NCBI RefSeq assembly: GCF_964204865.1
Contig: NC_135258.1
Location: forward strand, 10,044,001-10,108,000
Reading direction: 5' to 3'
Origin: Styela clava
Taxonomy: Eukaryota
DNA: 64,000 nt
Of the stretch, positions 14,628 through 48,083 are shown one piece after another. Position 1 is the stretch's first letter. Each line of letters begins with the position of its first letter. Position numbers and translations under genes: made by a program. The notes beneath the pieces were generated by a model that saw only the letters and a program-made list of their open reading frames with translations, ran no database searches and had not been told where the DNA came from.

Positions 14628-16587
14628 ATGAAGGTAATCGTAGCTGGTTTTCCTAAAACCAGGACAAAAACATTGAATTCTGCATTGACGAAACTTGGAT
14701 ACAAAGTGTACGACTACTCAGAAAATGCAATTTATTTGGGAGACGAGTGGAAGAAAATTTTAACAAAACGATGAACAATGAGGATTTCAATAAAATGTAC
14801 AAAAATGTTGATGCATTTGTTGATTTACCAACGTGTTATTTTGGGGAAGAAATCCATAAGGCTTTTCCAGACGCGAAGGTGCGTGATTGTTTTGCGAATT
14901 TTTTATTACATCGTCTATTTAAATCCTTATTTATACATATTTAATATAAGTTGAAACATAGCTTGAGTATATGAATGCTGTAGTAATATAAATATATTTA
15001 TATAGTATGAATTGATTAAAATTGGTTTAGTCGAAGAATAAAATAATTATTTTAATCAGAGACAAACATACAGAGGGTCCCAAAAGTTAATTGATTAATT
15101 AATTTGTGAGTAATATCTGTTAGCCTACATTGGGACCACCCTGCATTGCATATGTATCATTTATTGGACACGTAGTGGACATAGCGATCGTTTCAATATT
15201 ATGTTGTTATTGTTATTTGTCTCCGTCATTTTTAAAAAATCGCTTTTCTCTTCGAATACAGGACCAATTGCTTTGAAATTTTCAGTGGTTAAAGATAAAA
15301 TTTTTCTCCAGAAGGCTATTACTTTTTTTTCGCTATGACGTCATCACAATTATTGCCATTGGGTGGCGCTACGTCTTCATATATTTGAGCATAGCTCTCT
15401 TGTTCAATAATCAAATTTTCATCCATGGACGTGTGTTGTTAATTGAAGTTGCCAATATTTTATGGACGATGGATAACTATAATTTATTGACTGAATCTAG
15501 ATTCTAGACCAAGCAGTCTAATTTCATCACCATTTCAAAATATAAACAAAGGTTGATGGGATTTTGTTGTAGATAATCCTCAGTACACGAGAAAATGAAG
15601 ACGTCTGGTAAAGAAGCCCTGAAAATCAATTTAGAATATCGGAGAATCTAATATCGTACGTAATTTTAATGATACTTTCGCCAACTGCACGGAAAACGTT
15701 GACAGACTGCACGTACCCAGCATGTAAGTGACAACAAGTATATCCATTTGACTTATTGGAAGTGGATCTATAGATCGCTGTTAGTATTATGTTGTTGTTA
15801 GAATTCTTTTTCACGTTCTTGTTGTTAATCAAATTCGATTTTCGTGTTTTTCGCTTCCGTGTCCATATAGTCCGTTTCCATGCATTTGTGTATTGCTCTC
15901 TTGTTACGTAATTGCATGTTGGTCCTGTTGTTCGAATGCCATCAATTTTACGTAATGTAAAATAATGATGCAGATTTAGCATATGATACTTTGTAATTTT
16001 GTGTATTATAGCTCGGATTATGTTCGCGATTCCAAATATGCGAACGATCGGGTATAAACCTTTTAATAGAGAACTGCTCAAGTTGAAATATCGTGCACAT
16101 AACGCACACGTTTTACAGGTATGTATAATGAATTTATTTGAAAAATATCTGAAAATATTTTTACTGCATTACTTTCAATGTACTATGTCATGTAATCATT
16201 GCTGAATGCTTCGTTGACGACGATCACAACATACTCCATTTAGGATTTTGAGATATATATGACTTCATAATTAAGACGAGTTTTCGTATGTCTTTCAAGA
16301 TAATATTTTAAATTAATATTTATTATTTTATACAGAATGCACCCAAAGACAAACTGTTAGTTTACAAAGTGACGGAAGGTTGGGATCCACTTTGTGATTC
16401 TCTCGGTGTTTCAATCCCTAGTGAACCCTTTCCACATAAAAACAAAGGCGGAGATATCACCCAAGAGATTATAAGCACACATCAAATTATGCCTAAACTC
16501 AAGCAAGAAGTGATGGCTTCATACATACTTTTGACAGCAGGATTCGGAGTTAAGAGGATATTTGTTATACAAATTTGGTCTGAATAA
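14628..16587 (+). pseudogene. Sulfotransferase-like (PF17784-type) array copy 1, pseudogene
   Basis: MKVIVAGFPKTRTKTL has a P-loop G->R change. There is a TGG->TGA stop plus a frameshift in exon 1 (~14771) and a TAA in exon 2 (GTCTGGTAA ~15608). The 4-exon layout is retained. Confidence 0.85.
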
Positions 16588-17643
16588 AATTGCATTATTG
16601 ACTTGCAGAGCGTAACGTTGTAGTCTTACTTTATACCATGGTTATTAAAATCACATCCCTAACTAACTACAAGTTTGCATTATGTGTTTGAAACAACGAT
16701 TCGATTATTCTATCTATACTGACAAGTCACAAAAATCATGTTAAATGTTTCATAATAAAATGTTAAAAAGTATTATCTATTTTATTGGTATGTAAACAAA
16801 TGATTTATGATAAACAAAATGACGTTCTTATCGACAGTTGTTTATTGTTCACATGTGATTTATAGTTTTGAGTTTTATTACAACTTTGCTCCGAATAAAC
16901 CCTAGATCAGTTTTTTTTTTATTATTAATTTTATTTTATTTGGCTTCATCTGAAAAAAAAACGGATTATTTCTTCATGAGTTGCTGGATACCTACAATGC
17001 AATAAGTTCGCCAACAGATTCGATTTCTAGCCTTAGTCGTAAATCTCTCCGAAACTGACGCTGGAGTCCTGCAACAATGAAATTTCATGTATTACTCAGC
17101 ACACTGCTTTCCATGTTTTTAGGTAAAATTTCAACACTAGAAGCACAATTTTTGTAGTGACATTTATTAAAACTAACTATCATGAATTACACTCAATCAC
17201 TGATCGGATTCTAGTGATTTCGTGTTCATGGAACTCAGATTTGGGCCGCGCTCCAAAAAGATTTAAAAGCACTGCCCTAAAGTAAAGCATACAAGTGTAA
17301 GCATTTTCAGACGCAATGAAATTTTTTCTATTTTGTATAGCATATTACGAATCACGTTCTGCAAGCTTACATTTTACCCCGATTTTTCTAACCATCGATG
17401 CTAAATACATTTAGGTCAGTAACTCAATACCGAGTTATTCTGGCAGAGTGATATCGAAATATATATATATATAGGTGTCCAAATGCCTACCGAAGAGTAT
17501 ATTTCAGACAGCTTTTAAATGTGTATTTCATCGACAAAATTTGAACCAATATTAGCTTAATTTCGTAATGTTTGCTTACCACAGACGGCGTTATACTATA
17601 CCCGGAGGGCCAACTGCAATACCGTGTTGCAATAGCACTTAAG

Positions 17644-19848
17644 ATGAAGGTTATAGTTGCTGGATTTCCTAAAACAGGTACAAAGACCATAAACACAGTT
17701 TTAACTGAATTTGGATACAAGGTGTACGATTACCCTGAAAATGCTTTCGATTATGGAGATGACTGGGGACGAATATTTAAAGAAGGCTGGAGCGTAAGTG
17801 ATTTTCAGCGAATGTACAGAGATGTAGATGCTGTTGTTGACGTGCCATGTTCCTATTTCTGGGAGGAAATCCACAAAGCATTTCCAGATGCAAAGGTAAG
17901 ATTTGGAGAAATAATAAAGTAGGTGATTTCTTTCTTACATGCAAAAATGGGAGGGCCATTGGGTCAGCCACAGATCCAAGCTCGCGTTATTACATATATT
18001 TTTCTGTATGTGTTTTTATCTAAAAGCTAAATTTACGTGTATAGTCTTGAATGTTCACGCCTCTGCATGCATACCTGACGAGCTAACAACATGCGTGGTT
18101 CATTGTATCGGGATATGATATATTATAATGGTAAGTATATACCGATATATAAAGGAATACTGATGTAGATATATAAAAAGAGTTATAATATGTTTCTTAA
18201 TGATTTGTCATGAGTCAGTTACTGCTACTTAGCCTTGGGCAGTTGGCGAATGAAAGTGAAGAACATTAATATTTTTCAGTGATAAAACTTTCCTAACTTG
18301 AAAATGTATTGTACTCCTTTTTTGCGAAATGAATATTTTCAGTCCATTTAAAGGCAAAATTTGGTAGATGCTTCGCGAACCTTTCCGATTCCGATACGTT
18401 ACTCGCTGCTGCAATGAGTACGTATTTTGCAAATGTTGACGTTTCTAATAAAACAAGCTGCATATTTGTGTCATTCCATAAATGGTGCTAAAGGAAAAAT
18501 TAATCTTAAATCAAAACTCTATATAGTTCATTCGAGTAAACATTTAGGCTGCCACAAATCTCACAGACAAATGCGATAATCCCTGTTAACATGAAAATAA
18601 TTCATTCCGTAAATAGCTTGGCAAATAGTTGATGAGTATATTTAGGGTACTCGTCAGTATTTGTTGCCCGAATGAATAAATAATGCATGTGGCACGCATA
18701 TATTGGTACTGATCATAAACTTGAAATGGCTCGCTTATAATTAAGTTGTATTTTGTCGACTAAAAAATGCAAATCTTGTTATAAACAAAATAATTTTAAC
18801 ATGCCTGTCTGAACTTATCCATAATTGATTAAAAAATGGAATCAACATAATTCAGATCATTCTATCAATTCGTGAAAATGAAGAAGCATGGTTGAAAAGT
18901 TTAGAGAATCAAATGAAGATGATAGATTTTAACATGTTAGGATTAATGCAACACCTTTCACCTACATTCAGAAAGTTGGAACGTAATATGGATCTTAATT
19001 TCTGTGAGTTTAAAATTACACGGACCGTTGTACATTTTACGGCTAATAATAGAAGAAATAAAATAAAAAATCGAAAAAAATTGAATTATATATGGTTCAA
19101 ATCGGCAGATAACAAAATGCAAATTGAAAATCAATTTTTCATTTAGACCTATACGTATTGTTTTATTTGGAGTTGTTCTTTTTCTACAGCTCCAGCTATG
19201 TTTGGTATCTCAGACATACGAGATATAGGGCGTAAACCATACAACAAGGAATTGCTGAAGCTTAAATATCGTGCTCATAACGCGCATGTCATTCAGGTAT
19301 TATCATTTAGATTTTAAACAGCATGGAATATTTTATACATCTAAGCCGGCCCCTGTATCAATTTATTCACTCAATATCAATTTTACCTCACCTTTGCTAT
19401 ATCCTGCGCTTAAGTGTGACATGAAAATTTATACGAATCATTCAACTTATACTTTAAACGATACTGTATGTATTGAAATACCAAACACAGCCTGTTTTTT
19501 TTTTATCTGGCTCCAACAAACTTTTGTCTAAAAATACAGAATGCACCATCGGACAAGCTTCTCATTTACAAAGTCACTGATGGTTGGGATCCTATTTGTA
19601 AATTTCTTGGAGTTCCTGTTCCTAACAAACCATTCCCGCACAAAAATAAAGGTGGAAAATATGTTATTGATATTATAAACTCTCATCCATATGCTAGAAA
19701 GATGGAGAAAGAACTGTTGCTGTCATTACTAGCTTCTGCCACCATGATTGGAATCGGCGGTTATATGGTGTATAAAATCGGTTTCTCAAACCTTCGAGAA
19801 ACATCCATGAACTTGTTTACAAGTGCACAATCCTACTTTTGTGAATAA
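17644..19848 (+). CDS. Sulfotransferase-like (PF17784-type) array copy 2, intact, ~271 aa, C-terminal TM anchor
   Basis: Exons 17644-17895, 18856-19003, 19190-19296, 19540-19848 join in frame. Motifs: MKVIVAGFPKTGTKT (5'-PSB-like P-loop), DAVVDVP..FWEEIHKAFPDAKIILSIR..W..S (3'-PB-like), YRAHNAHV, GWDPICKFLGVPVP..PFPHKN, then hydrophobic tail LLLSLLASATMIGIGGYMVY. Confidence 0.88.
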
Positions 19849-23884: not shown

Positions 23885-25225
23885 TAATTTCCCAAAACGG
23901 AAACAAAAATATTGAACGAGGCTTTATCCATACTCGGATATAATGTGTATGACCATCACGAAAATGCTTTTAATTTTGGCGAACAGTGGGGTGAAATATT
24001 CCGCAAAGGTTGGACCACTGATGATTTTAAGCGAATGTACAGTGGAGTAGATGCTGTCGTTGATGTACCATGCTGTTATTTCTGGGAAAAAATTCACAAA
24101 GCTATTCCTGTTGCAATGGTAAGAAAATACGTGATGTTTGTTTCTTCATTTGCGGTTCAACGGGTCGGCGTATAGCGAAACTTATAAATTTACTTTTTGT
24201 AACAGTTATCACACTTTAAAATAACCCCTTTTCTAAAGGCATTTGAGGGGTATAATAAGTCAGCAAATACGATTTTCTTGGTCGCACTTAGCTTGAAAAT
24301 GGTTTTCATGTTTTACAACATTATAAGATAATATGTACATGCGTGAAATCTTGCCATTTTGATTTGCCATAACTCGGAAATAGTGGGAGTTTTTTTTCAC
24401 AAAGATTTGTCTTCGGATTTGATATATTTTCACTAAGAATTTCTGCAGATTGTTTTGTCACTGCGAGAAAGTGATGAGGTTTGGTTAAAAGGTTTCGAGA
24501 ATCAGATGAAAGTCGGAGGAAACAACATTGTTCTAACTGTGATGAATTATCTCTCGCCGACATCAAGAAAAATGGGGACTAATGTGGGATATCCGTTATG
24601 TAGGTACTTCGTAAATTATATAGGCGACTGAATATCGTGAAAAAAGCATGTACATATTTGATTTGCATCCATATCCAACATCGAAATATACCAATAGATG
24701 ATACTAACGGCATTTCCGATTACTTTGAAGCTATCACAATATTCGGAATCTCAGACATACCGTACGTTTGATTGATGTCAACCTTACAATAAGGAGTTGT
24801 TGAAACTGAAATATCGTGCACATAACGCTTACGTAATGCAGGTAAATATTAGGAAATAATACCTTCTCATTTCTGACTAATTCTACATGAGTTTATATCA
24901 TCACTGTGATATTGAATATTTTCTAATGTAGAATACACCCCCTGAAAAATTACTTATTTACGAGGTGACGGAGGGCTGGAAACCTCTGTGTGATTTTCTT
25001 GGAGTCCCGATACCGGATGAAGATTTCCCACATAAAAATAAGGATAAGGGTGGAGAAATCCTAAAAGAAACTATGAAAAATCACCCAATTATGCAAAAGA
25101 TGAAACAAGAAATATTGATATCATCGCTACTTTTTACAACTTTTCTTGGCATCGGTGGATATCTTGTTTACAATAATGGTTTAATGAACATGTTCAATTC
25201 ACTAACTGATGCACTCAAGCGCTAA
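23885..25225 (+). pseudogene. Sulfotransferase-like array copy 3, pseudogene
   Basis: The start and first codons are lost and the P-loop is degenerate (FPKTETKIL). Exon 3 has a TGA/frameshift (~24768). Exons 2 and 4 remain recognisable (EGWKPLCDFLGVPIPDEDFPHKN + TM tail). Confidence 0.82.
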
Positions 25226-25565: not shown

Positions 25566-25599
<34 letters not shown>

Positions 25600-26375: not shown

Positions 26376-26947
26376 ATGAAAGTCATAGTATCTGGATTTC
26401 ACAAAACCGAAACGAAAACGTTGAATGAGGCGCTAACAATACTTGGATACAAGGTCTGCGATTATTTCGAAAATGCGCATGATTAGGCTGACGAATGGGG
26501 GAAAATATTTCTCGTAGGTTGGACTACTAACGATTTTAAGCAAATGTACAAGAAGGCAGAAGCTGTCGTCGATGTACCTTGCTGTTATTTCTGGGAGGAC
26601 AGTCCATTCTTTTATCTTATAATGTTTATTTCATCGAATATTTGTGAATACAGAACGCATCGCCAGATAAACTTTTAGTTTACAAAGTCACGGAAGGTTG
26701 GAAACCACTTTGTGATTTTCTCGGAGTTCCAGTGCCCAGGGATGATTTCCCTCACAAAAATAAAGGCAGAGAAATTTTCAAAATAAACATGGAGAAACAT
26801 CCGGTTATCCAAAAATGTAAACGAGAGGGGATTAGAACGTCGTTACTTCTTGCAACGACTGTTAGCGTTGGATATATTGTTCACAAATATGGTTTATGGA
26901 ATATTTATCGATCGGTCGCCGACGCAATAACTCTTCCGTGGATCTAA
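26376..26947 (+). pseudogene. Sulfotransferase-like array copy 4, internally deleted pseudogene
   Basis: MKVIVSGFHKTETKTL with an in-frame TAG at ~26484. Exon 1 breaks off at FWE (~26598) and runs directly into intron-3-like sequence and exon 4 (26654-26947). Exons 2-3 are missing. Confidence 0.85.
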
Positions 26948-27833: not shown

Positions 27834-29577
27834 ATGAAAGTTATAGTTGCTGGGTTCTCCAAAACTGGTACAAAGACTTTAAACTCAGCGTTAACTAAAT
27901 TAGGATATACGGTATATGATTATCCAGAAAACGCATTCATATTGGGAGATGATTGGGAAAAAATACAAAAATATGGCTGGACAACAGCTGATTTTAAGCG
28001 AATGTACGAAAACGTAGATGTCGTCATGGACGCACCGTGTTGCTGTTTCTGGGAAGAAATTCATAAAGCATTTCCTGATGCAAAGGTAAAATTTTTACTT
28101 TTGGTGATGAGGGATTAGATGTAGAATTGCTTAATGTTTTCTGAATGTATGATTTATGGTGGATGTATGATTTATGGTCAATACACAAACAATTGTCAGT
28201 TATTACTTTTCAAGTTGGAGGAAAAGCTTAATAAATGAACAGTATAATGTTTTATATCATTTATTTATAACCAGTACAAATTCATGCTATTAGCAATATT
28301 CTTCAACATTGTTCCCCGATTTCTGTGAATGATTCAACACAAGAATTTATAATTTTTTCAATACATGAACAATAGCAGCATTGATAGGTTATCTGGTCAA
28401 GTTTATCTTCACGTTGGTGAGCTTGCATTCGGATACCTCTAGCTACCTCATCTACCATTACCTTGAAACAATAATCAAAAAAGTAGCAGCAGTAAATATA
28501 TATGTTACACACTATAAGTATTTTTATGTGAGACTAAACAAAATCACTTGATTTTAATAGCATAATTAATTTACTGTTTAGATAATTTTATCTATTCGAG
28601 ATAGTGATGAACAATGGCTCAAAAGTTTGGAAAAACAAATGCTGAGTTCAGAAGGAAATTGGGCTGTCAAATTGATGACTTATCTCTCGCCGACTTATCG
28701 CAGTATTATGAACAAAACTGCATTACCAACGTGTACGTATCATTGTTTTTATAAAACGTACAATACAAGGAATTTAAAAATTAGAAAAGCTTATGTACGG
28801 CTATGTCAATGTGTATTATTTGTTATGAATATAAATTTAACAATCAACCTTAAACAATAATTCGCTAAGCTCCTGAAATAAATAGTAAAGTAAAAATCTA
28901 TTTATTACAGCTCTAATAATGTTTGGAGTTGATGACATCAGAGCAATTTGTTACAAACCTTACAACAGAGATTTGTTCAAACTCAAGTATCGCGCACACA
29001 ATGCTTACGTGTTGCAGGTACTGTATTGCCTACCAATAATAAATATTGCTATTCGTGATTCCTTTTACTGCACTTGCTTCATTATTTCAAAATAATATCA
29101 TTTTGTTTTTTAATGAATTGAGTGACCATGCTGGCGTTTTTGAAACTCCTCGATTGATTGATACTCCACATTCCCAATCGCCAAGAGTTTAAAACGTTTA
29201 CCGTGCGTAATTACATTGTCAATAAAATGATGACACGCATATGTTGATAAAATTCTTTTATACAGAATGCCCCACCTGATAAACTTCTCGTCTACAAAGT
29301 TACAGAAGGTTGGGAGTAAAGTTGGGAAGGTAAATTTCTCGGAATTCCTGTTCCGGATGAACCGTTTCCTCATAAAAACAAAGGAGGAGACATTATTCAA
29401 GAGATGTTGGCCACGCATCCGACTGTAATACGAATGAAAAGAGAAATGATTTTATCAACCGTAACCCTAGCAACGATGCTTTGTCTTGGTGGATATTTTG
29501 TGTACAAACGTGGGTGGAAAGATTTATCCATTACATCCATGATTGATTCAGTAAGAGGACTAACGTATTCAGAATAA
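27834..29577 (+). pseudogene. Sulfotransferase-like array copy 5, single lesion (premature TAA in exon 4)
   Basis: Exons 27834-28085, 28582-28732, 28911-29017 and 29266-29577 are otherwise intact. GW-DPLC-KFL is replaced by GGT TGG GAG TAA AGT TGG GAA GGT AAA TTT (TAA 29317-29319). Confidence 0.8.
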
Positions 29578-31374: not shown

Positions 31375-34300
31375 ATGAAAGTCATAGTTGCTGGTTTCCC
31401 CAAAACCGGCACAAAAACATTGAATGTAGCGTTGACAAAATTAGGATATAAGGTATATGATGCACCTGAAAACACGTACTATTTAAACAAGGATTGGGAT
31501 AAAATACTAAATAAAGGGGGATGGTCAACAGAGGATTTCAAGCGAATGTACAAAGATGTAGATGCTGTTGTCGATATGCCAAGCTGTTATTTTTGGGAAG
31601 AAATTCACAAAGCCTTTCCTGACGCGAAGGTAATATTAACAATTAAGAACGTAAATAAATCGTCACGCTAATAACCGAATTGCGTAAGTCATTTTTAGCA
31701 GTTTTGAGAAAAACGTAATAAACCTCCTAATGATATTGTTATGTCATTGAGAGTCAATCATTTTCCATGGTTCAATTTTTTGATCGTAGCCGGATTTAAG
31801 TTATTTTGTATGACGCAGTTATGTGACGTCATAATTGCGCACTGTGACTTAGGCAGAAATGTGTCTATGACTTTGGGACATACGCAATTTCGCAACTTGA
31901 CTATATGCAGCAGTCATGAAAAACAAACATTCCAAAAACGAATGTAATTCTCAGTATCTACGATGTCTAATCCCCAAAATAGCAAATTTATTTCAATTAC
32001 ATCATTTTTTATGTTCAATAATATGTATTTCATCAATATAACACGTTCTGCACACCCACCGAAATAAGACTAAGATTAAATATAAAGAATTAAATAGTAA
32101 TGCACCATTATATGAAAGCCAATCAAGGTGAATTGGACTCAGACAGTGACTATCACAAGTGCACGCCTTCCTAAACCGTAGTAAAAATCAAATTTATAAG
32201 CGCTGAGCTAGAATCTGAGATAGAATCTGAGAATCTAAATACCTACTTTATAAAAAAAACTCAAAACCGCCAAATATGACTTAGGCAATTCGGTTATTAG
32301 CCTGACGAAATGTATTTCATAGACATTTTCACAATGACAAATCTCAATATGAACTACTGATTTTTGTGGTTTTCACGACAACTTTTTATCCCAACTTAAA
32401 TGTTTATGATACACAGGTTCGAATGGTATTTTGTTATCACGTATTGTAAGTTAGTGTCTCTGATTGAGGCTGAGAAATTGTTTTAGCTCTCAATAAGCAA
32501 CAGTATAGCTATAGAGTCTATACTATAGACCAGGGGTGGGCACACCACGGCTCGCGAGCCGCATGCGGCTTTTCTCGCTAACATAAATTATTATCCAAAT
32601 TTTAACTAAGAGAAAAACGTTCATGTAAACTCTTTTAATTTATTAAAAAGCCGTAAAGAAGTTTTCGTCAATGATTAGGATAAATTATCTTTTAGTATGA
32701 AAATCGCTGTAGCGTTGAATTTTGAATTTAAGTCAGTCAAGCCACAAATCTTTCGTCACAATGGTCAATTGATGCGTCGGCGGTATTGCAGCTTGATTGC
32801 GGTTAGTCAGTCTAAGTTACTGTGCGATATGTCCTCAAACAAAAACGAAAGTACGAAGATGAAAACAGAGTTGTCAAGTCAGAATGGGAAGAACGTACGA
32901 ATTTACCAGTCAGCAGAATAAACCTTTGTGCTTAATCTGTCATAAGCTACTAAGTCAGAATAAAGTCAGCAATTCAATCAGCACCATGAAACGAATCATG
33001 AAAACTTCCTACGAGACTACTCTCGTAAATCAGCTATAAAGAAACACAAATTAAATGAGCTCAAATTGTGCATATATTTGAGTATAGCTGCCAATTGTTT
33101 ATCTATTTATTGTTATTAGACTCTTGTGTGAATTTCTTTTCCGTTCATGGTATTTTGATAGTATTATTAAATTCACAAATTTTCCGGCTCTTTTAAAGTT
33201 CTGACTTGCAGCATGCGGCTCTTATACTAAAAAATTGTGCCCACCCCTGCATAGACCCTCAGCGTTCAAACATAGACAATTTGTGTAAATGTGTACATTT
33301 CCGTACTGTAAAATGTGCGGCAGGATTCGCAAGTCAATTTCATGCTTGTTTGCTTAATTTGAGTTCTGAAAGAGGTTTACATATAAAACAAACAAGACAA
33401 CTCTTCAAGAGTCAACGATTCCAAAAAAAAATGCTTGCTTATCAAAACAAAATGACAGAAAGAAGGGTAAAATCAAAAATTTGTAGACTATCTGAAACAG
33501 GGTCGTCCAACTTTTTTGGTCGAAGGGCCACATGTAGTTTACCAATTATTGCGCTGGCCACTTAACATGGCATTATGTTCTAGTTTTGCTACACTGAGTA
33601 CAGGTTAATGGAAAAACAAACAGTACCTCCACACCAAACTTTCAGAATTATTTACCAATAAAACCAATAAATAAACCAAAAAAAAAGAAAATACGTGCTG
33701 ATACATGTGCTCGCGTACTCCAAACATCACATTGAAATAAATTTTTAAAAAAATACGTGGGTGTGTGGGGTCTAATACATTGTTTTAGCATAGTATATGG
33801 CAGGTTACCGCTTCTATACAGATTGAGTTCGAATATATATGCCTTTTTAAATTACACTTTCCACATTCTTGACAGATGTATGATTTTTCTCCAGTATGGG
33901 TTCGAACATGGCGTTTTAATTCTTCTGGAGTTTTGAAGGATTTCTTACAAACCAAAGGGTTTCTTGCCAGTAAGGATCTTTTCATGCTTCTGTAATTTTT
34001 GAGCCTGAAGCGCCCACCACAACATTTACAAGCATATGGTTTATCTCTGTCATGTATTTGTGTATGTGTCCGTAGATTACTTCTCTTTCGAAAATATTTT
34101 CCACATTGATCACAAAAATATGGTTTTTCTCCAGTATGGATTCGAATATGGTTTTTCAAGCTAGAATGACCGGAAAAACCTTTTTCACAATATTTACATT
34201 TGTATCGTTTTTCTCCAGTATGGGTTCGAATATGACATTTTAAATCAGTTTTATTATTGAAGGCCTTCTTGCATTTTTCACAAACAAAAGGTTTCTCTTC

Positions 34301-37214
34301 AGTATGTTTCTTTTCATGAATCTGTGAGTTATTTTTGTGACTGAAGCGTTTACCACAATGTCTGCAAGCATATGGTTCATGTCCATTATGCATTTGCATA
34401 TCAACCTGTAGATTACTTTTTTGCTGAAATGATTTTCCACATTGCTCACAAGAATATGATTTTTCTCCAGTGTGAGTTTGAACATGTCTTCGTAAGTTAG
34501 ATTTTTGCTTGAAACGTTTTCCACAATATTTACATATGTATGGCTTTTAACCAGTATGGGTTCGAATATGAGTCTTCAGGTTCGACTGCTGCGAAAAATA
34601 CTTCCCACAATGATAACAATGAAACGTTTTTTTTTCTGGTGTGGGATCGAATATGTAAATCTCGTTTCGAATCCAATGACTTATGACATTCTTTACACAC
34701 CAAAGGTTTTTTCCTGTATGGATTCTTTCATGCGCTTGTACATGACTTTTTCGCCTGAAACACTTGCCACAATGTTTACAAACGTACGGTTTATCTCCAC
34801 TATGGATTTGTGTGTGTACCTGGAGATAACATTTTTGTCGGAAACATTTTCCGCGCTGTCTACAAGAATATGGTTTTTCATCAGTGTGGACTCGAATGTG
34901 ACGCATATACGCCCCTGTGGTTGTAAACGATTTTTCACAACTTTTTGTCTGCAGTTTGGTTCTGTGACTACCTTTATGTATTTCCAAAGACACTCCTTCT
35001 ATAAAGAACCTCTCGCTGGGTTTTTTCGGTTTTACTTTTCCATCGGATTTCTCCATATTAGAAGTTTGTGTAAATGTCTTTGACAAAGATGCAATTACTG
35101 ATGAGACCCATGAATATGTCCGATGTCCGCTAGATATCCTTTGTTATTTATGATATATATTACGCACATTGCAGATCACTCCATATATATTACTGCACTA
35201 AAATTTTCTTATGTTATCTGACCCGGAGCCCCAAAAAATGGTAACGTCAGTACTTTATATTTCGAATTGCCGGTAACACTTGAGATATGTAGAGTGTTAC
35301 AGTATTCAACGGAGCAGCATTTTATAAACACTAGAATGAAAGTATTCACAAAGGAGTTCAATATTTTATTTTGATTTTATTACATTTAATGAATATGCAT
35401 ATAAATTATTTACAAAAACCATACTATAATTGAATTTCGAATCTTTTCTAGTTCAAAGTCATCAAAACTGCCTAAATAAAAATAAGATCCACCTTACTGA
35501 AAATGCAACTACTCGTCTTTTTCAGAACGATTCAAAATAAAGCTAATCATAAACTACTAACTGCGGCTATAATTTCCTGTCTAGTTCCCAGAATTTACGT
35601 CGCGCTTAAACTTATTGTTTGAATTGTTAGACGCGTAGTAATTCGTTAATCGTAGTATTCATAGCCTTTTCCCAACAGGCTCCACACACACACTATGACA
35701 GATTATCATTGAATACCATTTATAAGATCATGCCTGAAACTTTACAATAACCATCGTGTATAGTCTACTAAAATGATATTGTATTCTACATATGGTCGAC
35801 TGGTACAGATAGAAATGTTGCACGGTTAGCATTAATCTTGCTATTTCGGTTTGAAACACCGGATAGCTAAAACTAACATAAATCGCTGGGAACATTGTAT
35901 GTGTGGGACCTCATAATTTAGAATTTAGTTTGCTATGAAGTGTAAAACAATGGCATATATCAAAGCCTGAATAATCCAATTCTTTTTCAGATAATTTTAT
36001 CCTTGCGTGAAAGCGATGACGAATGGCTAGAAAGTTTGGAAAAACAAATGAAGACATCGGGTGGCATTAGGGCAATAAAATTGATGACATTTCTTTCTCC
36101 AACTTATCGTAATATTTTGATTAAAACTGGTCGACCGGCATGTGAGTAATGAGAATAAAATATTGACATTTTTTCACCTCGAAATATTGAAATTATTTTC
36201 CGGAAAATCAAATTACGAAATTGTAGATTTTTGCAAATTCAGTTCATATATCCACACCATAGTATATTGTTGAATTTGGTCAGTGAACTCCAAGTCAGTT
36301 TTATTTTTCAACTATGCATCACAATATGCTATCGAAGCTATTAAAGGAAATGAATCTGATACAAAGTTGAACTGTTTGCTATTTGTTTGAAGACTACCCA
36401 AATTTTAGTCGGAGCCTAACAAAAGCACTATAGCAGTGAAACCTTTATTACTGAATATCATCAACTTTTGCAATCCTATATTTTTACAGCCTTAATCATG
36501 TTCGGTATGGAAAATATCAGTTCAATAAGCCACAGGCCTTACAATAAAGACATGCTAAAACTCAAGTATCGTGCCCATAATGCTCATGTATTGCAGGTAA
36601 TTTTGAATATATATATATATTGTTCACTAAGATTGATAGACTATTGAGCAATATGATATTTCTGTAAATTATTCTGGCTTTCGTTCTCCGGGTGGTCTGA
36701 AAGTAGCTGAAATAAAGCAGATAATGTGCCGGAAAACAACATTCATTGGATAGAAAGATTCAAAAAGCAAAATACCTGCTTTTTGGTCGCTCTCATTTTC
36801 TACTATGTATATATTATATATTTTTATTCACAAGACTAGTTATGATTATCAATTAGTTGTTTTTGTTCCGATTATACCTAATTCAGTTGCAAAATTTTTA
36901 CTCAGAACGCACCTCCGGACAAGCTTCTTGTATATAAAGTCACAGAAGGATGGGATCCCCTTTGCAAATTTCTTGGAGTTCCTATTCCTGATGAAACATT
37001 TCCTCACAAGAATAAAGCAGGAATTATTATTCGTGAGATGTTGGCAACGCATCCAATTCTTATAAAAATGAAGAGAGAAATGTTGATATCATCTGCAATC
37101 CTGGCAACTTCACTTAGCATTGGCGGATTTTTTGTTTACAAACGTGGCTTCAGAAATATAATTAAACTTATCATCAATTTTGTTCAAAATATATTTCCAA
37201 ATAATTACTTTTGA
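31375..37214 (+). CDS. Sulfotransferase-like array copy 6, intact, with a 4.36-kb insertion-laden intron 1
   Basis: Exons 31375-31629, 35991-36141, 36490-36596, 36906-37214 join in frame, with all family motifs and the TM tail (MLISSAILATSLSIGGFFVY). Confidence 0.83.
31661..32307. mobile_element. Sola1-like non-autonomous element, copy 2 (internally deleted)
   Basis: Same TIRs as 9201-10022, with 4-bp TSD AAAT/AAAT. It is ~175 bp shorter and has a TAGAATCTGAGA tandem duplication at the deletion junction. Confidence 0.85.
32531..33249 (+). mobile_element. Internally deleted hAT (Buster; GTF2IRD2/EPM2AIP1-like) transposon
   Basis: TIRs CAGGGGTGGGCACA / TGTGCCCACCCCTG with flanks CTATAGAC/CATAGAC. 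A frameshifted transposase N-terminus, KRKYEDENRVVKSEWEE...KPLCLICHK...HHETNH (BED-like finger), lies at ~32829-33065. Confidence 0.85.
33785..35086 (-). pseudogene. Intronless tandem C2H2 (Kruppel-type) zinc-finger pseudogene, antisense within intron 1 of copy 6
   Basis: Roughly 14 CxxC...HxxxH units with TGEKPY-type linkers are split across frames (ORFs 34547-35086 and 33785-34399, with frameshifts between and within them). Confidence 0.85.
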
Positions 37215-37846: not shown

Positions 37847-40400
37847 ATGAAAGTCATTGTAGCTGGAATGCCCAAAACGGGCACGAAAACTTTGAACGAA
37901 GCTTTGTCAAACATGGGATTCAAGGTATACGATTATATCGAAAATTCTGTATACTTACGAAATGAATGGATGAAAATTTTGAAAACAGGATGGTCAACCG
38001 AAGATTTTAAACGGATGTTTGAGGACGTTGATGCAGTTACAGATGTTCCTAGTTGTTATTATTGGGAAGAAATCCACAAGGCATTTCCTGATGCAAAGGT
38101 ACTGCCATAAATTCAATCCAATTACCGAATAGGTTGTCCCAATTTAAATAACAATAAACAATGAATATCATTGCTGCCCTATTTTCGCTCATCTATCTAC
38201 CGCACCAATTCAAAGAACGAGATATATTTCAGTTGTGAGCTTCAACAAAGATGGTTTGTGGGTTCAATGCCCCGAAACAATCATAACTCGAGTTTGTCAG
38301 TGCAAAATTTATGATTGTTCCGGGACAATGAACCCACAAACCATCTTTGTTGAAGCTCACAACTGAAATATATCACGTTCTTTGAATTGGTGCGGTAGAT
38401 AGATGAGAGTACACGTCATCTTACCGATTCCTTAATCAATTCTGTTACTGCTTGATGCCAACTTGTGATTGACAACATAAGATCTCTGAAAACATATATT
38501 CGTAATTAATTTATCCATCCATGGGTCTTTTTTATTTTACAAAAATTTCACTTTAGTCGTCCATTGCGATTACTTCGAAAAACATCCCTAGCGTATAGTA
38601 TTTTAATATTATATGTTACGTGTGCTCTCCCGATGTGCTAAAAAGACATATATATGCTAAAAAAAAATTGGTACATGAAAAAACGAAGTCCGAGTTGGCA
38701 CATTTAATTTGTGTTTTCGGTTTGCGCAGAAACAAAACATGCTCTACCCCCAACAGGCTTGATAAAAAGTTATTCGGATCTCATTCGTATATATACAACA
38801 TAAAGTGGTATTGCCTTTCTGTTACTCGATGTGCTTAAGCAATCTCCGCGAGTAACTTATTTTAATTCCCACATCCCTATTAAATATTTTAGTTTTTATA
38901 GACAAAATTTAATAATGCAAATGTTATATGACTTTTTGTAGATAATTTTAACTCTTCGAGAAAATGACGAAGTTTGGCTTAAAAGTTTCAAGAATCAAAT
39001 GAAAACGTCGAATGGAAATACAATGGTTACTTTGCTGAGCTATCTTTCTCCAACTTTTCGAAGATCTGTTTTTGATATTGGATTTGCTATGTGTAAGAAA
39101 TCATATTTACAGGACATAACAGTAACCTTAGCTTTGTAAAGATTCAGTGAATATTATGCTTAAATACAAGTCGGCAACGCAGAGGTCATTTGCAACATAA
39201 TCTAGAAAAATCATAACTTTTGTGCAAAGCGTCGTAGATTACTGAGACTTTTAGGAAAAATTCACACACAAACAGAGTTTAGGTGTGAAAAATAAATATA
39301 TATACATTTTTTCATTTTTGTTCTGTTTTTGGGGTCACCCTTTGTATACGCAATAATAAACAGCATGTTATCGATGCACTCACGTCGTTTTTTCATTATG
39401 TTTTTGAACAGCAACCGATGACAAGCCTCTAATCAGTTTATGAGTAAAATCACGTAAAATTACTAGCGACATCGCAGTAGTCTTAATGCTCTTAAATGCA
39501 TATTTCATTCTCTGAGACTTGAAATTAGTTATGCTGTTTTCAGTCTAATATTATTATTCATTTTTTTTTCTATAGCACCGGTAATATTTGGATTAGCTGA
39601 TGTGCGCCATATAGCATATGACAGCGTGAACGGTGACATGCTGAAACTGAAATACCGAGCACACAACGCTCATGTTATGCAGGTAAATAATAATTTTATT
39701 ATCTTTCGATTATACTGTTCTCAAGAAATTGGTCATTAACATTTATCCTACACTTGTAATAAATTTGCGCGCAGTCGTATGTAGCCTATTACAGGAATAA
39801 TAAATACGTACATATATACAGTCTTTTCAAGTAATTCTTGATCTCTTAGCATATTACAGTCATTTTTCCACTTTTGTACAATATCTGTAATATTTATCTC
39901 TTATTTGTATAAGTATACAGGAACACTCGCAATCCTGACCACTCATGCACAAATCATCCAACAAGCACTCAATGTTTATATATTTTTTGTGCTTCAGTTT
40001 TAGCTGTTTTATTCTAATTTTACGCACCTTCCAGCACTATATAGTTGCACCTTTGATTTCTTAAATGATCTCTGTTCATTGTGCTGTGATTAAGATTCTA
40101 TAACGAGATTTTCATGTATATATGGTTTCTATGCTCAAATTCTACAAATAGAATGCACCACCGGACAAACTTCTCGTTTACAAAGTCACGGAAGGTTGGG
40201 ATCCGCTATGTAAATTTCTTGGCGTTCCTGTCCCTGATAAACCATTTCCACACAAAAACAAAGGCGGTGCAATGATTGAGGAACATTTGAAATCGGATCC
40301 AATCGTACAAAAGATGAAAAGAGAGATGATGGTGTCTTCTATTTTGTGCACAGCCTTTCTTGGTCTTGGAGTATACTTTATCTACAAACGTGGAATTTGA
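37847..40400 (+). CDS. Sulfotransferase-like array copy 7, intact
   Basis: Exons 37847-38098, 38942-39092, 39576-39682, 40152-40400 join in frame: AGMPKTGTKT, DAVTDVP, YRAHNAHV, GWDPLCKFLGVPVP, and a TM tail ending YKRGI*. Confidence 0.87.
38188..38407. repeat. Near-perfect inverted repeat (~99-bp arms, 22-nt spacer) in intron 1 of copy 7
   Basis: 38188-38286 is the reverse complement of 38309-38407 with about 4 mismatches. Confidence 0.95.
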
Positions 40401-41385: not shown

Positions 41386-44300
41386 ATGAAAGTCATTGGT
41401 GCAGGATTATTGAAAACAGGCACGAATACATTACATGAAGCTTTTACTATTCTCGGTTACAAGTCCTACCATTATTTTGAGAGTGTATCATATCATGGAG
41501 AAGAACGGTCAAAAATATTGAATAAAGGATGGAAAACAGAAGATTTTAAACGGATGTACGAAAATTTAGATGCTGTATTTGATGGCCCGGGGCTCTATTT
41601 CTGGGAGGAAATTCATAAAGCTTTTCCTGAAGCCAAGGTGAAAGTCTTGATATAGAAAATATTAATACTACATTTTAATTTTGCTCTCCGTCTCGTTGAC
41701 TTCGAAATTATATATATATATTGCTGCGGCTCGTCTAGTATGTAACCAGAAGTATAAACTTATAGTGGGCGTGATATTTTTCCGTATTTCATTCGCGATT
41801 CCGCCGTCCCAAAATATGTCACTGCGACGTCACCACAATCATGTAATAGAGCTTACCAAAGACGATTGGAGACGATTACCCGCAAGTGTAAAGGTTTGCC
41901 GAAATAAGGAAAACGAGACAATGTTTGAAAATTTGTCCGAGTGAAATAAGTTCTTGGGCGACTTCTGAAATTTCAATTGTTCCGTCACCATCACGCAATT
42001 TTTGATTGGCCATTTTTATGACGATAAACAAGGAAGTCAATATCCATAGAAAGGTGGAAATTGGTCATAAACTATTTCCTCTTTTTCCGTATTACCATAA
42101 AAGTTCGTTTCAAAACTCCGAACCCAGTAAATCATATTTGTACGCTCTTTGCTCGTGTGAATTTCCCTAACTCTAAACTTTGGGACCAAAGGCCAATCTG
42201 TTTGAATATTATTTAGGGAGATTGAAATAATGATTTCATTTTTAGATTATCTTGACTGTTCGCGAAAACGAAGATGTGTGGCTTGAAAGTCTGATTAATC
42301 AAATGAAAGTTATGGAAAGCAATTTTCTATTTCGACTGATGGAATATCTCTCTCCATCTTACCGCAAAACAATCATCAACATCATGCTTCCCTTGTGTAA
42401 GTTCCATTTGTTCAATAAATAACATACGCTACGAACCAATACTTATTCAGTTGTATAACACCTATATCACGGACGATATCCAAGAAACTGTTAAATAAAG
42501 AGATAACAAAACAGTCAGCGCTAGGGATGTAAGTTTCGAATATTTCATTTTCGAATCGAATCCCGAATCTGATTCTATTTGGTATAGCACATTATCGTTA
42601 ACTTCCTTTAATTTGAAAGAGCAATAGCATAAATTGTAATTAAATAACAATAAGGAACTTGAAGAATGATTAAGTTAGTAGAAGAACACCTTGAATTTAT
42701 GCTTCAACTAGATAACATATTTGAGAATATTCATTTTTGTTACATAAAGTTACACTCAGTTATATTTACTTATTACCTAACTTTATGTTCGCAAATATGA
42801 CCCAAAGTATATACCGTAGATCATTTCTTCTAAAATTAAACTTCAAAATTCATCAAAATGATAAACGCCAGTGAAATATGCGTTATTGGCCTACCGCCTG
42901 CGCCGCGATTTTAATTAAAGAAAGAAAATGATAACGAAGGAAGCATCGCAGATCTATGTTTTTAATGAGGAATAATATTGTTATTACAATGACATCACAT
43001 AGGTAATTTAAAGACACGTTTATATAATGAGATATTTGTAAAACTTTTTTAGGATTTTAAATAGTCTAAAAAAAGTAACGAAACCTTTGGTCCCTCTAAA
43101 GCTGTGACCCATATGAAATTTAACAACCCTCGGAGTGTCACGACTTAGAAACGTTGTAAACGTAGGGAAAATAAACGCTTTTGGTCGGTGAGGAGACAAC
43201 GCCGCTGTGTCGTGCAATGGCCTCGTGTTATCTAAATTCTAAATTATTATTTTTTTAAAAATAGAATCAAGTCGTTTTTTTCAAATTGCTTCGAGTTTAT
43301 GTTGATTTGAATTGCTTCGATTCGAAATTCTGAAACTTACATCCCTAGTCAGCGCACACAAAGTGATAACGTCTACACGTTGATGATTAATTTATGACGT
43401 TTGGTAGGCCTAATTGAAACAAATGTCGATATTCGCTCTTAGGAAGAAAATTCCATGACTTAAGATTCGAAGTGTAAATAGAGCTTGAATTGAATGAGCA
43501 GACAATTTCAACTGGAAAACTGCGTGATATGAACACTATTAATTATCTTTTTAAGCCTAATTCTGAGTCTGATAAAACAGGGACGAGTCTGGACTTGTAG
43601 GTACATATATATTTGTTACACTACGAACATTCCTGAAGAGATTAAAGCAAAGCCAATGCAAAATGCTATGCTGCGATAATGAACTTAAAATTAAGAAATC
43701 GTTTCACTTTTTCAGCGAAAATATGCTTTGGAATGGATATCCGTAAAATTCGCTGGGAAAATCATCTTAACAGGGAATTGATCAAACAGAAATATCGAAT
43801 GCACAACAGATATGTGATGCAGGTTGTAATACTGTTGTAAACTTACCTCACAGAGTACATAGCCAAGACGAAATTTTGTAATTTTTTTTAAATGTAATTA
43901 CATATTTGGCCCCTACAAATAGGGAAAAGCCTAGCACACATCTCTCTAAAATAAATGTAATAACATTCCATAATCGAATAAAAGCAAAATCATAAATTAA
44001 TCACCCTTTGGTCAGTTGTTTTGGCAGTTATTTTTACATATCTGTTTCTTAACAGTATGTACTAGAAGCACATCAAAATTCTATTATTTATTGTCACCTT
44101 GCAAAACATATTCATGTGTAACTCTCAGCGCTTTCCATAGTTACTATAATCTATGTATTTCAAAGTTTGAGGTTAGGTTTAAACTATATTTTTTATTGTT
44201 AAAATAAAATCGTAAACATTACAGAATGCACCCAAAGACAAACTCTTAGTTTACAAAGCTTCAGAGGGATGGGAACCACTTTGTAAGTTTCTTGGTATTC

Positions 44301-44518
44301 CTATTCCTGACGAACCATTCCCACATAAAAACAAGAAAGGAAAAATCATCAATGAATATCTACAATACAATCCATTGGTGATTCGAATGAAAAGAGAGAT
44401 GTTTGTATCCTGTACTGTTCTGGCAATTGTGGTACCAATTGGTGGATATCTTCTGTATAAACGAGGAGTAAAAAATTTATATGAATCCTGTTTAAAGTTA
44501 TTTTGTGACTATGTTTAA
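41386..44518 (+). CDS. Sulfotransferase-like array copy 8, intact, divergent subfamily
   Basis: Exons 41386-41637, 42246-42396, 43716-43822, 44225-44518 join in frame: MKVIGAGLLKTGTNT, SYHYFE, DAVFDGP, YRMHNRYV, GWEPLCKFLGIP, TM tail. Confidence 0.85.
42522..43347. mobile_element. hAT MITE with Ac-like termini, 826 bp, in intron 2 of copy 8
   Basis: TIRs TAGGGATGTAAGTTTC / GAAACTTACATCCCTA with a perfect 8-bp TSD GTCAGCGC and subterminal TTCGA/TCGAA repeats. The paralogous site in copy 9 (~46975-46990) is empty. Confidence 0.93.
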
Positions 44519-44995: not shown

Positions 44996-45140
44996 TCATA
45001 CAGACACCAGCATAGAAAGTGAAGCGCTTGTCTTTTGCGGTTGTTTCAAATTGAAGCCACCTCCTGCAAACCTCGCTCCGTCTGTACGTTTTGATTGAAT
45101 GATTGGCGCACTAGATCGAGCTAATGCAGGATCGCGTTCC
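44996..45140 (-). other. Duplicated CFAP58 terminal exon (orphan copy, reading frame open)
   Basis: After an intact AG acceptor (45141-45142) it reads ERDPALARSSAPIIQSKRTDGARFAGGGFNLKQPQKTSASLSMLVSV*. The true last exon reads ERDRALAQAGAPIIQPQRTDGARFAGGGFNLKQPQKTSA*. Confidence 0.85.
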
Positions 45141-45358
45141 CTAAAAATATACAAAATAAATGGTATAAACTGAGCACCGAGGCATGCTTGTCAATATGAT
45201 TGTCAATATGTGTGCCACTGACGCTTGAACCTCGCGCAATGAGGATATAAGTAAACATCACAGTGAGCTAGTGGCAGTCCTTTTAATTTTGCGCATCGGC
45301 GTATGTAGACAGTCTAGTGTGAAATCCTTGTCAGGAAATATACTACAGACAGGTTATC

Positions 45359-48083
45359 GTGAAAGTCATTGGTGCAGGATTATCGAAGACAGGCACCAAT
45401 ACCTTACATGAAGCTTTTACTATTCTCGGTTACAAGTCCTACCATTATTTTGAGAGTGTATCATATCATGGAGAAGAATGGTCGAGAATACTAGCTGAAG
45501 GATGGAAAACAGGAGATTTTAAACGGATGTACGCAAATTTAGATGCTGTATTTGATGGCCCGGGGTTCTATTTCTGGGAAGAAATTCATAAAGCTTTTCC
45601 TGAAGCTAAGGTAAAAGTGTTAATGCACAAAATATTAGCACTACAATTTGATTTGGCTTTCCGTCTCATTGACTCGAAAATTATGTATGTATGTTTGTTC
45701 ATTTGCCTCAAAATGTAATAGTATCTGTATAATAATTAAAAGTGTAAAAGAGACTGGATACATGTTCAAGACCTTACTGGCCTAAGACGCATGTGCGACA
45801 TGTACCCCTAACGAGTATAACAGCAGTTTAGGACTGCTGCGTTATATTAGGACAATATATATACATGAAATATGCTACAGGGCCTACAAATAAAACTCCA
45901 TTACAATACACAGGGCAAGAGTTACGGCACAACGACGATATGTACAATAGTTAAGTTATGGCACGTCCATGTCCTAGAATTCAGTGTGAATATATTTATA
46001 TGAATATTGCTGTGGCTCGTCTAGTTTATAACAACAAGTATATACTTATAGTGGGCGTGACATTTTTTTCGTATATATATCATTCGTGGCCCCCTCGCAA
46101 TTGCGCCATTCAAAAAAAAATACGTCACTGCGACTTCACCACAATCACGTAATAGAGGTAATACCTATTGCCAAAGAATGGGGACTATTAACCCAATCAT
46201 TGCGAAGAGCTCAAATGTATATGAATCTCATGCAACAAAATTCAAATCAAATTTCAACCACGAAAGCTTTTTTTATTCAATATATACCGGTATTTACGAC
46301 ATATATACAACTGAAATCTTCAAAATCTTGTCGAAATGATGAAAAGGAGACAATATTTGCAACCACGTTTGATATTTTGTCAGAGTCAAATATCTTCTTG
46401 AACGACGTTTTAAATTTTAATTGTCCCGTCACCGTTATGTAGTTGTTGATTGGCCATTCTTATGACGATAAACGAGGAAGTCAATATCCATAGAAGGATG
46501 GAAATTGGACATAAACTGTCGCCTGCTAAGCGTATTACCATAAAAGGTCGTTTAAACACTCCGAAACGAGTAAATCTCTCTCTCGCTTATTCCTCGTGTA
46601 AATTTCTTCAACTCTAAACTATGACACCAAAGGCCGACCCATTCAAATTTTGTTTAAAGAGATTGAAATAACTTATTCTCATTTTTAGATTATTTTATCT
46701 GTTCGCGAAAGCGAAGATGTGTGGCTTGAAAGTCTGATTAATCAAATGAAAGTTATGGAAAGCAATTTTCTTTTTCGACTGATGGAATATCTCTCTCCGT
46801 CTTACCGCGAAACAATCTCCGGCATCCTACTTCCCATGTGTAAGTTCCATCTGTTAATTAAATAAATAACAAACGCTGATAACCAATTTTTATTCATGCG
46901 TATTTAATTACACACCAAATGTGAAACACCCATATACAGGCAATATCCAAGAAGCTGCTGAATAAAGAGAGAACAAAACAAAGCGCAAACGAAGTGATAT
47001 CTCGTCTGTACAAGTTGATAATTGATCGCTTTTGGTAGGGAGAATTGAAATAAACGGCGCTTTTCGTCCCGACCGTAGGAAGATAAATTCATGATTTCGA
47101 ACCGGAGTTGTAAGTAGGGTTTGAATTAGCAAATAATTTTTACGATTGTGAAGCGGCGTGATATAAAACACTATATTCTTAGCCTACTTCTGACTTCGAA
47201 AAAGGGGTGTGTGTACTCTAGATCCCTTATGCTGCGATGACAAACTCAAATCTAATAAGTCGTTTCACTTTATCTTCAGCAAAAATATGCTTCGGAATAC
47301 CAGATCTCCGTGAAATTCGCTGGGAGAATCATCTTAACAGGGAATTGATGAAACAGAAATATCGAATGCACAACAGATATGTGATACAGGTTGTAATACT
47401 GTAAACTTACCTTGCCGAGTACATAGCCAAGACGAAATTTTGTTATTTGTTTTAATATAATTACATATTTGGCGCCCACAGATAGGAAAAAACTAATACA
47501 CATCTCTACAAAATAAACATATATATTTGCATTTCAGAATCGAAGGAAAGCAAAATCATAAATTAATGACTCTTTGGTCAGTTGGTTCGGAAGTTATTTT
47601 TACTTATCTGTTTCTTAACAGTATGTACTAGGCAAAAAGAGCAGGCTACTTCAAAATCCTGGTATTTTTGTCCTCTTGCAAAATATATTCATGCGTGACT
47701 CCTAGTGCTTTCCATAGTTACATCAATCTATATGTTTCAAAGTTTGAGTTTAGGTTTGAACTCTATTTTTCATTGTTGAAATAAAATTGCAAACATTACA
47801 GAATGCACCTAAAGACAAACTCTTGGTCTACAAAGCTTCAGAGGGATGGGAACCACTTTGTAAGTTTCTTGGTATTCCTGTTCCTGACGAACCATTCCCA
47901 CATAAAAACAAGAAAGGAAAAATCATCAGTGAGTATCTACAATACAATCCATTGGTGATTCGAATGAAAAGAGAGATGTTTGTATCCTGTACTGTTCTGG
48001 TAATTGTGGTACCAATTGCTGGATATATTCTATATAAACGAGGAGTGAACAATTTATTTGAATCCTGTTTAAAGTTGTTTTGA
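45359..48083 (+). CDS. Sulfotransferase-like array copy 9, recent duplicate of copy 8; ORF open but ATG->GTG (possible incipient pseudogene)
   Basis: Exons 45359-45610, 46689-46839, 47280-47389, 47802-48083 join in frame. GTTACCATG in copy 8 corresponds to GTTATCGTG here, and an in-frame TGA at 45320 excludes an unspliced upstream ATG. Confidence 0.7.

Follow-up and report, generated by a model that had tools for sequence, protein, structure and literature searches.

Nine tandem genes and pseudogenes for putative tail-anchored sulfotransferases of the PF17784 family in the ascidian Styela clava

A 64,000-nucleotide stretch of the Styela clava genome (assembly GCF_964204865.1, contig NC_135258.1, positions 10,044,001 to 10,108,000 of the forward strand; hereafter, the window, in whose coordinates array positions are given) contains, at positions 14628-48083, nine co-oriented, plus-strand, four-exon paralogs of the sulfotransferase family PF17784 (Sulfotransfer_4). 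With moderate confidence, we read this array as a set of tandem genes and pseudogenes that would encode tail-anchored, cytosol-facing sulfotransferases and that evolve by birth and death. Four of the copies are intact (copies 2, 6, 7, and 8), one (copy 9) is open throughout its length but has a GTG codon at its start position, and the other four (copies 1, 3, 4, and 5) carry lesions that differ independently from one copy to the next.

The layout of the array was recovered by two independent routes: a local tblastn search with the four exon peptides of copy 7 returns nine plus-strand copies and no others in the window, and a six-frame motif scan detects the G-x-x-K-T-G-T loop intact six times and a last exon containing F-P-H-K-N nine times. 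All exon limits are canonical (GT-AG), and the intron phases (0, 1, 0) are kept across copies, such that exon 1 ends in A-K, exon 2 opens with I-I-L, intron 2 falls after the first base of a Ser codon, and intron 3 separates Q, the last residue of exon 3, from the N-A-P of exon 4. The window is free of N runs and has a G+C content of ~33 to 38%; Tandem Repeats Finder, applied to the array region, found nothing. A preliminary description of this stretch, made from the sequence without database searches, had proposed the same nine co-oriented four-exon copies and the same assignment of intact and broken members. The tblastn matches, the motif scan, and the exon limits agree with that description throughout, and the independent lesions that it ascribed to copies 1, 3, 4, and 5 are itemized, along with the structures of the open copies, as follows.

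Copy 1, 14628..16587, plus strand: pseudogene; its P-loop reads KTRT (Gly to Arg), frameshifts break exon 1 (near 14765) and the tail, and exon 2 contains a stop.
Copy 2, 17644..19848, plus strand: intact, 271 amino acids (aa); exons 17644-17895, 18856-19003, 19190-19296, and 19540-19848.
Copy 2 hydrophobic helix, 19714-19770, plus strand.
Copy 3, 23888..25225, plus strand: pseudogene, with the start and first 7 codons lost behind two stops, a P-loop reading KTET (Gly to Glu), and a frameshift and a stop in the 5′ half of exon 3.
Copy 4, 26376..26947, plus strand: pseudogene, with a P-loop reading KTET (Gly to Glu), a stop in exon 1, and exons 2 and 3 deleted, exon 4 sitting ~50 bases after exon 1.
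Copy 5, 27834..29577, plus strand: one lesion only, a small replacement with a stop at 29317-29319.
Copy 6, 31375..37214, plus strand: intact, 273 aa; exons 31375-31629, 35991-36141, 36490-36596, and 36906-37214.
Copy 7, 37847..40400, plus strand: intact, 252 aa; exons 37847-38098, 38942-39092, 39576-39682, and 40152-40400; P-loop at 37865-37888 and hydrophobic helix at 40326-40382, followed by YKRGI and the stop.
Copy 8, 41386..44518, plus strand: intact, 267 aa; exons 41386-41637, 42246-42396, 43716-43822, and 44225-44518.
Copy 9, 45359..48083, plus strand: 264 codons open, with GTG at the start position; exons 45359-45610, 46689-46839, 47280-47389, and 47802-48083.

Splicing of two intact copies is visible in contigs from three probable RNA runs belonging to three studies. 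Over the stretch covered by this read-contig comparison (38900-44899), the contigs cover exons and skip introns exactly at the predicted GT..AG junctions: introns 2 and 3 of copy 7 (39093-39575 and 39683-40151) and introns 1 to 3 of copy 8 (41638-42245, 42397-43715, and 43823-44224). A DNA run of Styela clava covers the introns, and none of the splice joints is seen in it. One backward joint, from 41557 to 38940, is most readily explained by copy 7 exon 1, situated outside the compared stretch, having aligned to its paralog. The copy 8 contig of run X2 (depth, 33.7) contains two extra bases (AT) after 42343, within exon 2; the insertion is absent from runs X1 and X3 and from the DNA run, and it would shift the frame in one allele of a gene that is otherwise intact and transcribed.

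The copy 2 model is identical over its whole length to an NCBI protein (LOC120339558; P0245, 271 aa). Exons were searched separately against databases, full-length analyses were performed on P0245 and on other database proteins returned by these searches, and joined exon models were used only locally (for translation, hydropathy, ratios of nonsynonymous to synonymous divergence [dN/dS], and comparison with fetched proteins). Sequence, motif, and modeled fold features all place these proteins in PF17784. The PF17784 profile hidden Markov model (gathering cutoff, 22.8 bits) aligns to P0245 from position 1 to position 214 of its 215 and gives a score of 184.6 bits. For copy 7, searched exon by exon, the same profile is matched by exon 1 (E value, 5e-24; 85.7 bits), exon 2 (2.6e-4), and exon 4 (9e-17; 62.1 bits); exon 3 alone (48 aa), which covers the variable middle of the domain, has no Pfam match. 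The PF00685 profile (cutoff, 22 bits) and the PF13469 profile both remain below cutoff for the copy 7 exons, the PF00685 score of 13.9 bits coming from the P-loop alone.

Matches to solved structures point to the same family. By sequence, P0245 matches SgdX2 (E value, 2e-20), Cpz8 (2e-19), and the schistosome oxamniquine-activating sulfotransferases (6e-15). An AlphaFold (AF2) model of P0245, with a predicted local distance difference test score (pLDDT) of 95.2 and a predicted template modeling score (pTM) of 0.88, superposes on Cpz8 in complex with 3′-phosphoadenosine 5′-phosphate (PAP) with a Z score of 23.9 and a root mean square deviation (rmsd) of 2.5 Å over 204 residues, on SgdX2 with a Z score of 22.2, and on the schistosome enzyme SmSULT-OR with a Z score of 20.4; across the three, the rmsd is 2.5 to 3.6 Å over 189 to 231 residues. 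The next family, the tyrosylprotein sulfotransferases, follows at a Z score of 9.6, and the model of a paralog (P0041) yields the same ranking of structures in Foldseek. Profile scores, sequence matches to solved structures, and fold, including the match to SmSULT-OR, thus confirm the PF17784-type membership that the preliminary description had proposed from motifs.

In an alignment of 103 homologs, K10, T11, G12, T13, D66, P68, K84, R90, W96, and S99 are conserved at a level of at least 90%, as is the GWxPLCxFL...PFPxxN block. All intact copies possess the Arg and Ser of the 3′-phosphate site (I-L-x-x-R ... W-x-x-S) and a D-x-P motif whose Asp falls opposite Asp91 of SmSULT-OR in the alignment; in the schistosome enzyme, this Asp hydrogen-bonds the acceptor hydroxyl of oxamniquine (PMC4618941). 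The KTGT loop is kept in copies 2, 5, 6, 7, 8, and 9 and has become KTRT in dead copy 1 and KTET in dead copies 3 and 4, and the stop in copy 5 interrupts the GWxPLCxFLG motif, which there reads GWE*SWEGKFLG. We consider it quite improbable that the fold has been kept by proteins that are not sulfotransferases dependent on 3′-phosphoadenosine 5′-phosphosulfate (PAPS), i.e., by noncatalytic regulators or by enzymes of some other nucleotide-dependent chemistry. Aspergillus oryzae LdrG/H, which also belong to PF17784, are described solely as lipid-droplet regulators, P-loop kinases share the fold at a Z score of ~9, and some paralogs elsewhere in the Styela genome have K-C-G-T or K-S-G-T loops, all of which would suit such a role. 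But the PAPS-binding and acceptor-activating residues of the solved relatives are >90% conserved, the three closest structures, by a wide margin, are those of proven sulfotransferases, and the intact copies are under purifying selection; moreover, the P-loop glycine is exactly what the dead copies have lost.

Beyond the catalytic domain, the five open copies share a distinctive C-terminal tail. Their sole strongly hydrophobic stretch lies at residues ~228-248, where the Kyte-Doolittle 19-residue mean reaches 1.8 to 2.4 (the highest value elsewhere is 0.7 to 1.5), and is followed by Y-K-R/I-G, with 5 to 25 residues in total after the helix. On the Eisenberg scale, the stretch has a mean hydrophobicity (<H>) of 0.68 to 0.79 and a hydrophobic moment (muH) of 0.07 to 0.10, values that fall in the transmembrane and not the amphipathic field; beyond the helix, copies 6, 8, and 9 continue for 16 to 25 residues of strongly amphipathic character (muH, 0.55 to 0.74). 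Solved homologs end before the tail, and residues 227-271 of the P0245 model are without counterpart. The N terminus (M-K-V-I-V-A-G-x-P-K-T-G-T) forms strand beta-1 and the P-loop of the fold and has no hydrophobic segment: because the protein opens directly with these elements, there is no signal sequence, and the N-terminal signal anchor typical of Golgi type II enzymes is absent. Hydropathy on both scales therefore upholds the earlier view of proteins with no signal anchor and a single C-terminal helix of the transmembrane type. The tail is also common among relatives, with a C-terminal hydrophobic helix in 117 of 142 full-length representatives (from the best 150 of 6452 related clusters).

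At the level of sequence, these features are the signature of a tail-anchored protein whose catalytic domain would lie in the cytosol; membrane insertion, topology, and target membrane are inferences. Several points weigh against this reading. Hydropathy scales are the only means by which the tail was assessed and the one basis for its insertion; the helix is of only moderate hydrophobicity, with Gly, Pro, Ser, and Thr among its residues; and the one eukaryotic precedent for membrane association in PF17784, that of A. oryzae LdrG/H, involves binding to lipid droplets by amphipathic helices. As for transcription of the genes, the run type “RNA” is a software guess, made for contigs that behave like transcript assemblies.

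The LdrG/H precedent speaks for an alternative in which the enzyme is the same but its C-terminal helix is not a spanning tail anchor, serving instead for peripheral or hairpin binding to a lipid droplet or membrane leaflet or for oligomerization. The G-G or P-I-G-G within the Styela helices and the amphipathic stretch after the helix in copies 6, 8, and 9 point the same way. We nevertheless judge this arrangement unlikely: the moment of the hydrophobic segment is almost nil and its mean hydrophobicity is high, its 19 to 21 residues are too short for a hairpin, and in copy 7, in protein P0001, and in the cnidarian, rotifer, and Ciona homologs, the helix ends 0 to 5 residues from the C terminus, like that of classical tail anchors. 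A spanning tail anchor remains our preferred reading of the helix.

The lesions, the dN/dS ratios, and the copy 9 allele all support the birth-and-death dynamics that had been proposed for the array. Old pairs of copies share 51 to 64% protein identity, with saturated synonymous divergence (dS) and dN/dS ratios of 0.12 to 0.18; for copies 8 and 9, the corresponding values are 89% aa identity, a dS of 0.15, and a dN/dS of 0.34. Copy 9 is a recent duplicate of copy 8, and the duplication extended into the 3′ flank, of which 277 bases are shared (44866-45142 and 48507-48783; 87% identical). The absence of an ATG from copy 9, observed previously, holds for this assembly, in which the start position (45359) is GTG and no in-frame ATG occurs upstream, but the loss of the start appears to be allelic. 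P0244 (LOC120339780), an older Styela clava protein at NCBI, begins with Met and shares 98% identity with copy 9, from which it differs at four amino acids besides the start. Since the best placement of P0244 in this assembly is on the copy 9 exons, and nowhere else, the ATG/GTG difference is most simply explained as allelic, with the GTG form an apparent segregating null allele.

Other members of the array are likewise represented among database proteins: P0088 (187 aa) is the truncated NCBI protein model of copy 5, ending at the premature stop, and P0309 is an N-terminally short version of copy 7 (97% identical). No protein identical to copies 6, 7, or 8 is found among the database proteins returned by the homology searches. 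The array genes are already present in public annotation, without name or function, and a paralog without introns, located in another part of the assembly, has 100% identity to NCBI LOC120332197, an “uncharacterized protein” of Styela clava.

The array is one among many in the genome. PF17784 yields 154 exon matches genome-wide, and at least 80 loci are of the exon 1 type, 15 of them with stops; many family loci occur in tandem arrays on the contigs labeled C14, C17, C19, C1, and C10. Two of these arrays (G000:C17:11.95-12.08 Mb and G000:C14:10.91-10.95 Mb, comprising loci L034-L047, L054, L055, and L064) have P-loops reading K-C-G-T or K-S-G-T; their neighboring members are near-identical, with branch lengths of ~0 to 0.01, and are very recent duplications. 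In a tree built from exon 1 (84 columns), copies 2, 3, 5, and 6 group weakly, copy 7 is unresolved, and copies 8 and 9 pair with a locus on C14 (G000:C14:9965927). This tree is too short either to show or to exclude a single, in-place origin of the nine copies.

The same tree bears on two intronless, full-length paralogs with the same tail (L001, 847-1617, minus strand, 256 aa; L002, 1016-1774, plus strand, 252 aa). Because each pairs, with starred support (100/100 for L001 and 98/89 for L002), with intron-bearing Styela loci, both look like expressed retrocopies and not foreign genes. The classical family PF00685 is also large in this genome (129 exon matches, with arrays at C6 3.29-3.53 Mb and C4 15.29-15.36 Mb), on which ground we rejected the notion that PF17784 has replaced the classical sulfotransferases in Styela. 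Considered purely as genome biology, the array is ordinary, and it offers a clean example of gene turnover.

Three further features of the region were recorded. Intron 1 of copy 6, 4361 bases in length, has an antisense zinc-finger open reading frame inside it: on the minus strand at 33788-35143, two adjoining open frames (253 and 198 codons) are rich in C2H2 zinc fingers and match zf-H2C2_2 with E values of 2e-48 and 4e-17, and they represent either a gene nested in the intron or a pseudogene whose frame is broken once. In the DNA run, summed contig depth rises to 300 to 1900 at 40500-40899, 42500-42699, and 43300-43499, versus ~10 to 15 elsewhere; these stretches are high-copy repeats situated between copies 7 and 8 and within intron 2 of copy 8. 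Downstream of the array, at 52778-53765 on the minus strand, lie coiled-coil exons of CFAP58 (PF21771; E values, 2e-17 and 3e-10).

Named homologs derive from the ascidians Ciona intestinalis, C. savignyi, Phallusia mammillata, and Clavelina lepadiformis, in which they occupy many loci, some with consecutive accession numbers, and further tailed homologs occur in the sea anemone Exaiptasia, a bdelloid rotifer, and an aphelid. Judging from these sequences, the tailed architecture is old and widespread, and the expansion is ascidian-wide (Ciona, Phallusia, Clavelina, and Styela). The array had earlier been ascribed to a chordate-lineage expansion: the expansion itself stands, as seen in four genera in a comparison made among ascidians, but the tailed form is not a chordate invention because it is present in a cnidarian, a rotifer, and an aphelid. 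Unnamed ENA assemblies also contain abundant clusters (with up to 247 members) of tailed homologs, 243 to 250 aa in length and 35 to 40% identical to the Styela proteins (P0011-P0026 and P0186-P0213).

This distribution also bears on whether tunicates acquired the PF17784 family by recent horizontal transfer from bacteria or fungi, as could be suspected from the bacterial origin of the best solved matches and from the two intronless paralogs in the genome. Such a transfer is extremely improbable, and we rejected it in view of the spliceosomal introns and the wide occurrence of the family in animals. The array genes hold three spliceosomal introns with conserved phases, the tailed form extends across a cnidarian, a rotifer, an aphelid, and four ascidian genera, and the pairing of the intronless copies with intron-bearing Styela loci, at starred support, is as expected of retrocopies.

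In the mechanism that we propose, residues 1-210 of enzymes of 250 to 275 residues form a PAPS-type sulfotransferase fold, opening with strand beta-1 and the 5′-phosphosulfate loop (K10-T-G-T13) and retaining both the D-x-P Asp that aligns with Asp91 of SmSULT-OR and the R90/S99 pair of the 3′-phosphate site. The fold is followed by a short juxtamembrane helix (P-x-x-x-K/R-M-K-R-E), a uniformly hydrophobic helix of ~19 to 21 residues, and Y-K-R-G with 1 to 21 further residues. With no signal peptide and its only hydrophobic helix at the extreme C terminus, the protein would be completed in the cytosol and then inserted as a tail-anchored protein, leaving its catalytic domain attached to an organelle membrane but exposed to the cytosol, in which PAPS is synthesized. 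There, it could sulfate hydroxyl groups on small lipophilic molecules at the membrane surface. We infer enzymatic activity, target organelle, and substrates in this scheme, and we offer alkanols and sterols as conjectural acceptors. The gene set itself evolves by birth and death: purifying selection acts on the old paralogs, copies 8 and 9 stem from one recent duplication, four copies are dead, and what appear to be null alleles still segregate.

If the tail works as its sequence suggests, PAPS-dependent sulfation would take place on the cytosolic face of a membrane, a sensible site for the modification of membrane-soluble compounds such as sterols and long-chain alcohols. Ascidians are documented to contain such products, in line with the preliminary description: C8-C10 alkyl sulfates (PMC6268736, PMC6780655, PMC13390645) and the sulfated steroid sperm-activating and -attracting factor (SAAF), with disulfated steroids of ascidians acting as sperm attractants (PMC8835908). 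This literature names alkyl sulfatases and links no sulfotransferase or other making enzyme to these compounds. The Didemnum genome paper reports unknown “sulfotransferase family domain” orthogroups among the few common to all tunicates. With at least 80 loci in Styela, dozens in Ciona and Clavelina, and fast birth and death, the family would be an obvious candidate set for the makers of alkyl and steroid sulfates. A bolder proposal, which we advance only tentatively and consider rather doubtful, is that tail-anchored, cytosol-facing PF17784 proteins constitute an ancient third topological class of sulfotransferases in animals, and in opisthokonts at large, massively expanded in ascidians, where they make alkyl sulfates and species-specific SAAF. 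Searches of the literature on tail-anchored sulfotransferases and on PF17784-type enzymes of Styela returned nothing relevant, and the animal sulfotransferases in the searchable literature are either soluble and cytosolic or Golgi-lumenal type II enzymes.

Among known systems, Schistosoma SULT-OR (SmSULT-OR, PDB 4MUA/4MUB, and its S. haematobium and S. japonicum orthologs) shares with the Styela proteins its PF17784 membership, the N-terminal P-loop, and the D-x-P Asp contacting the acceptor hydroxyl (versus the copy 2 protein: E value, 6e-15; Z score, 20.4; identity, ~24%). The schistosome enzymes differ in being soluble, at ~255 aa, and in ending where the Styela juxtamembrane helix starts, without a hydrophobic tail. 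The best structure and sequence matches to the copy 2 protein, Streptomyces Cpz8 (caprazamycin pathway, PDB 9KF1/9KF2) and SgdX2 (sungeidine pathway, PDB 8Y9P), are PAPS-dependent O-sulfotransferases acting on small secondary-metabolite hydroxyls; unlike the Styela proteins, they are bacterial, soluble, and 212 to 256 aa in length, lack the C-terminal 45 to 60 residues, and are encoded by single genes in biosynthetic clusters instead of multigene arrays. A. oryzae LdrG and LdrH, set beside the Styela family by description and not by sequence, resemble it as eukaryotic PF17784 proteins attached to a lipid surface on its cytosolic side, but they use two amphipathic helices where the Styela proteins have one uniformly hydrophobic terminal helix.

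More distant are the vertebrate cytosolic sulfotransferases (PF00685) and the Golgi type II enzymes, which have the same superfold (Z scores, ~8.6 to 9.5) and the same PAPS-binding logic (a 5′-phosphosulfate-binding loop and the Arg/Ser pair of the 3′-phosphate-binding site). The Styela proteins lack the catalytic His context of these enzymes and an N-terminal signal anchor, and their predicted topology would be opposite to that of the Golgi type II sulfotransferases. To classical tail-anchored proteins (cytochrome b5, Sec61-beta, and SNAREs), they bear no sequence relationship, yet the Styela copies have the same plan: no signal peptide, a single helix no more than ~25 residues from the C terminus, and basic residues after it, the 16 to 25 residues that follow the helix in several copies being long but within the usual limit. 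Set against these systems, the Styela genes represent a known enzyme family in a new form, one with a membrane-type tail.

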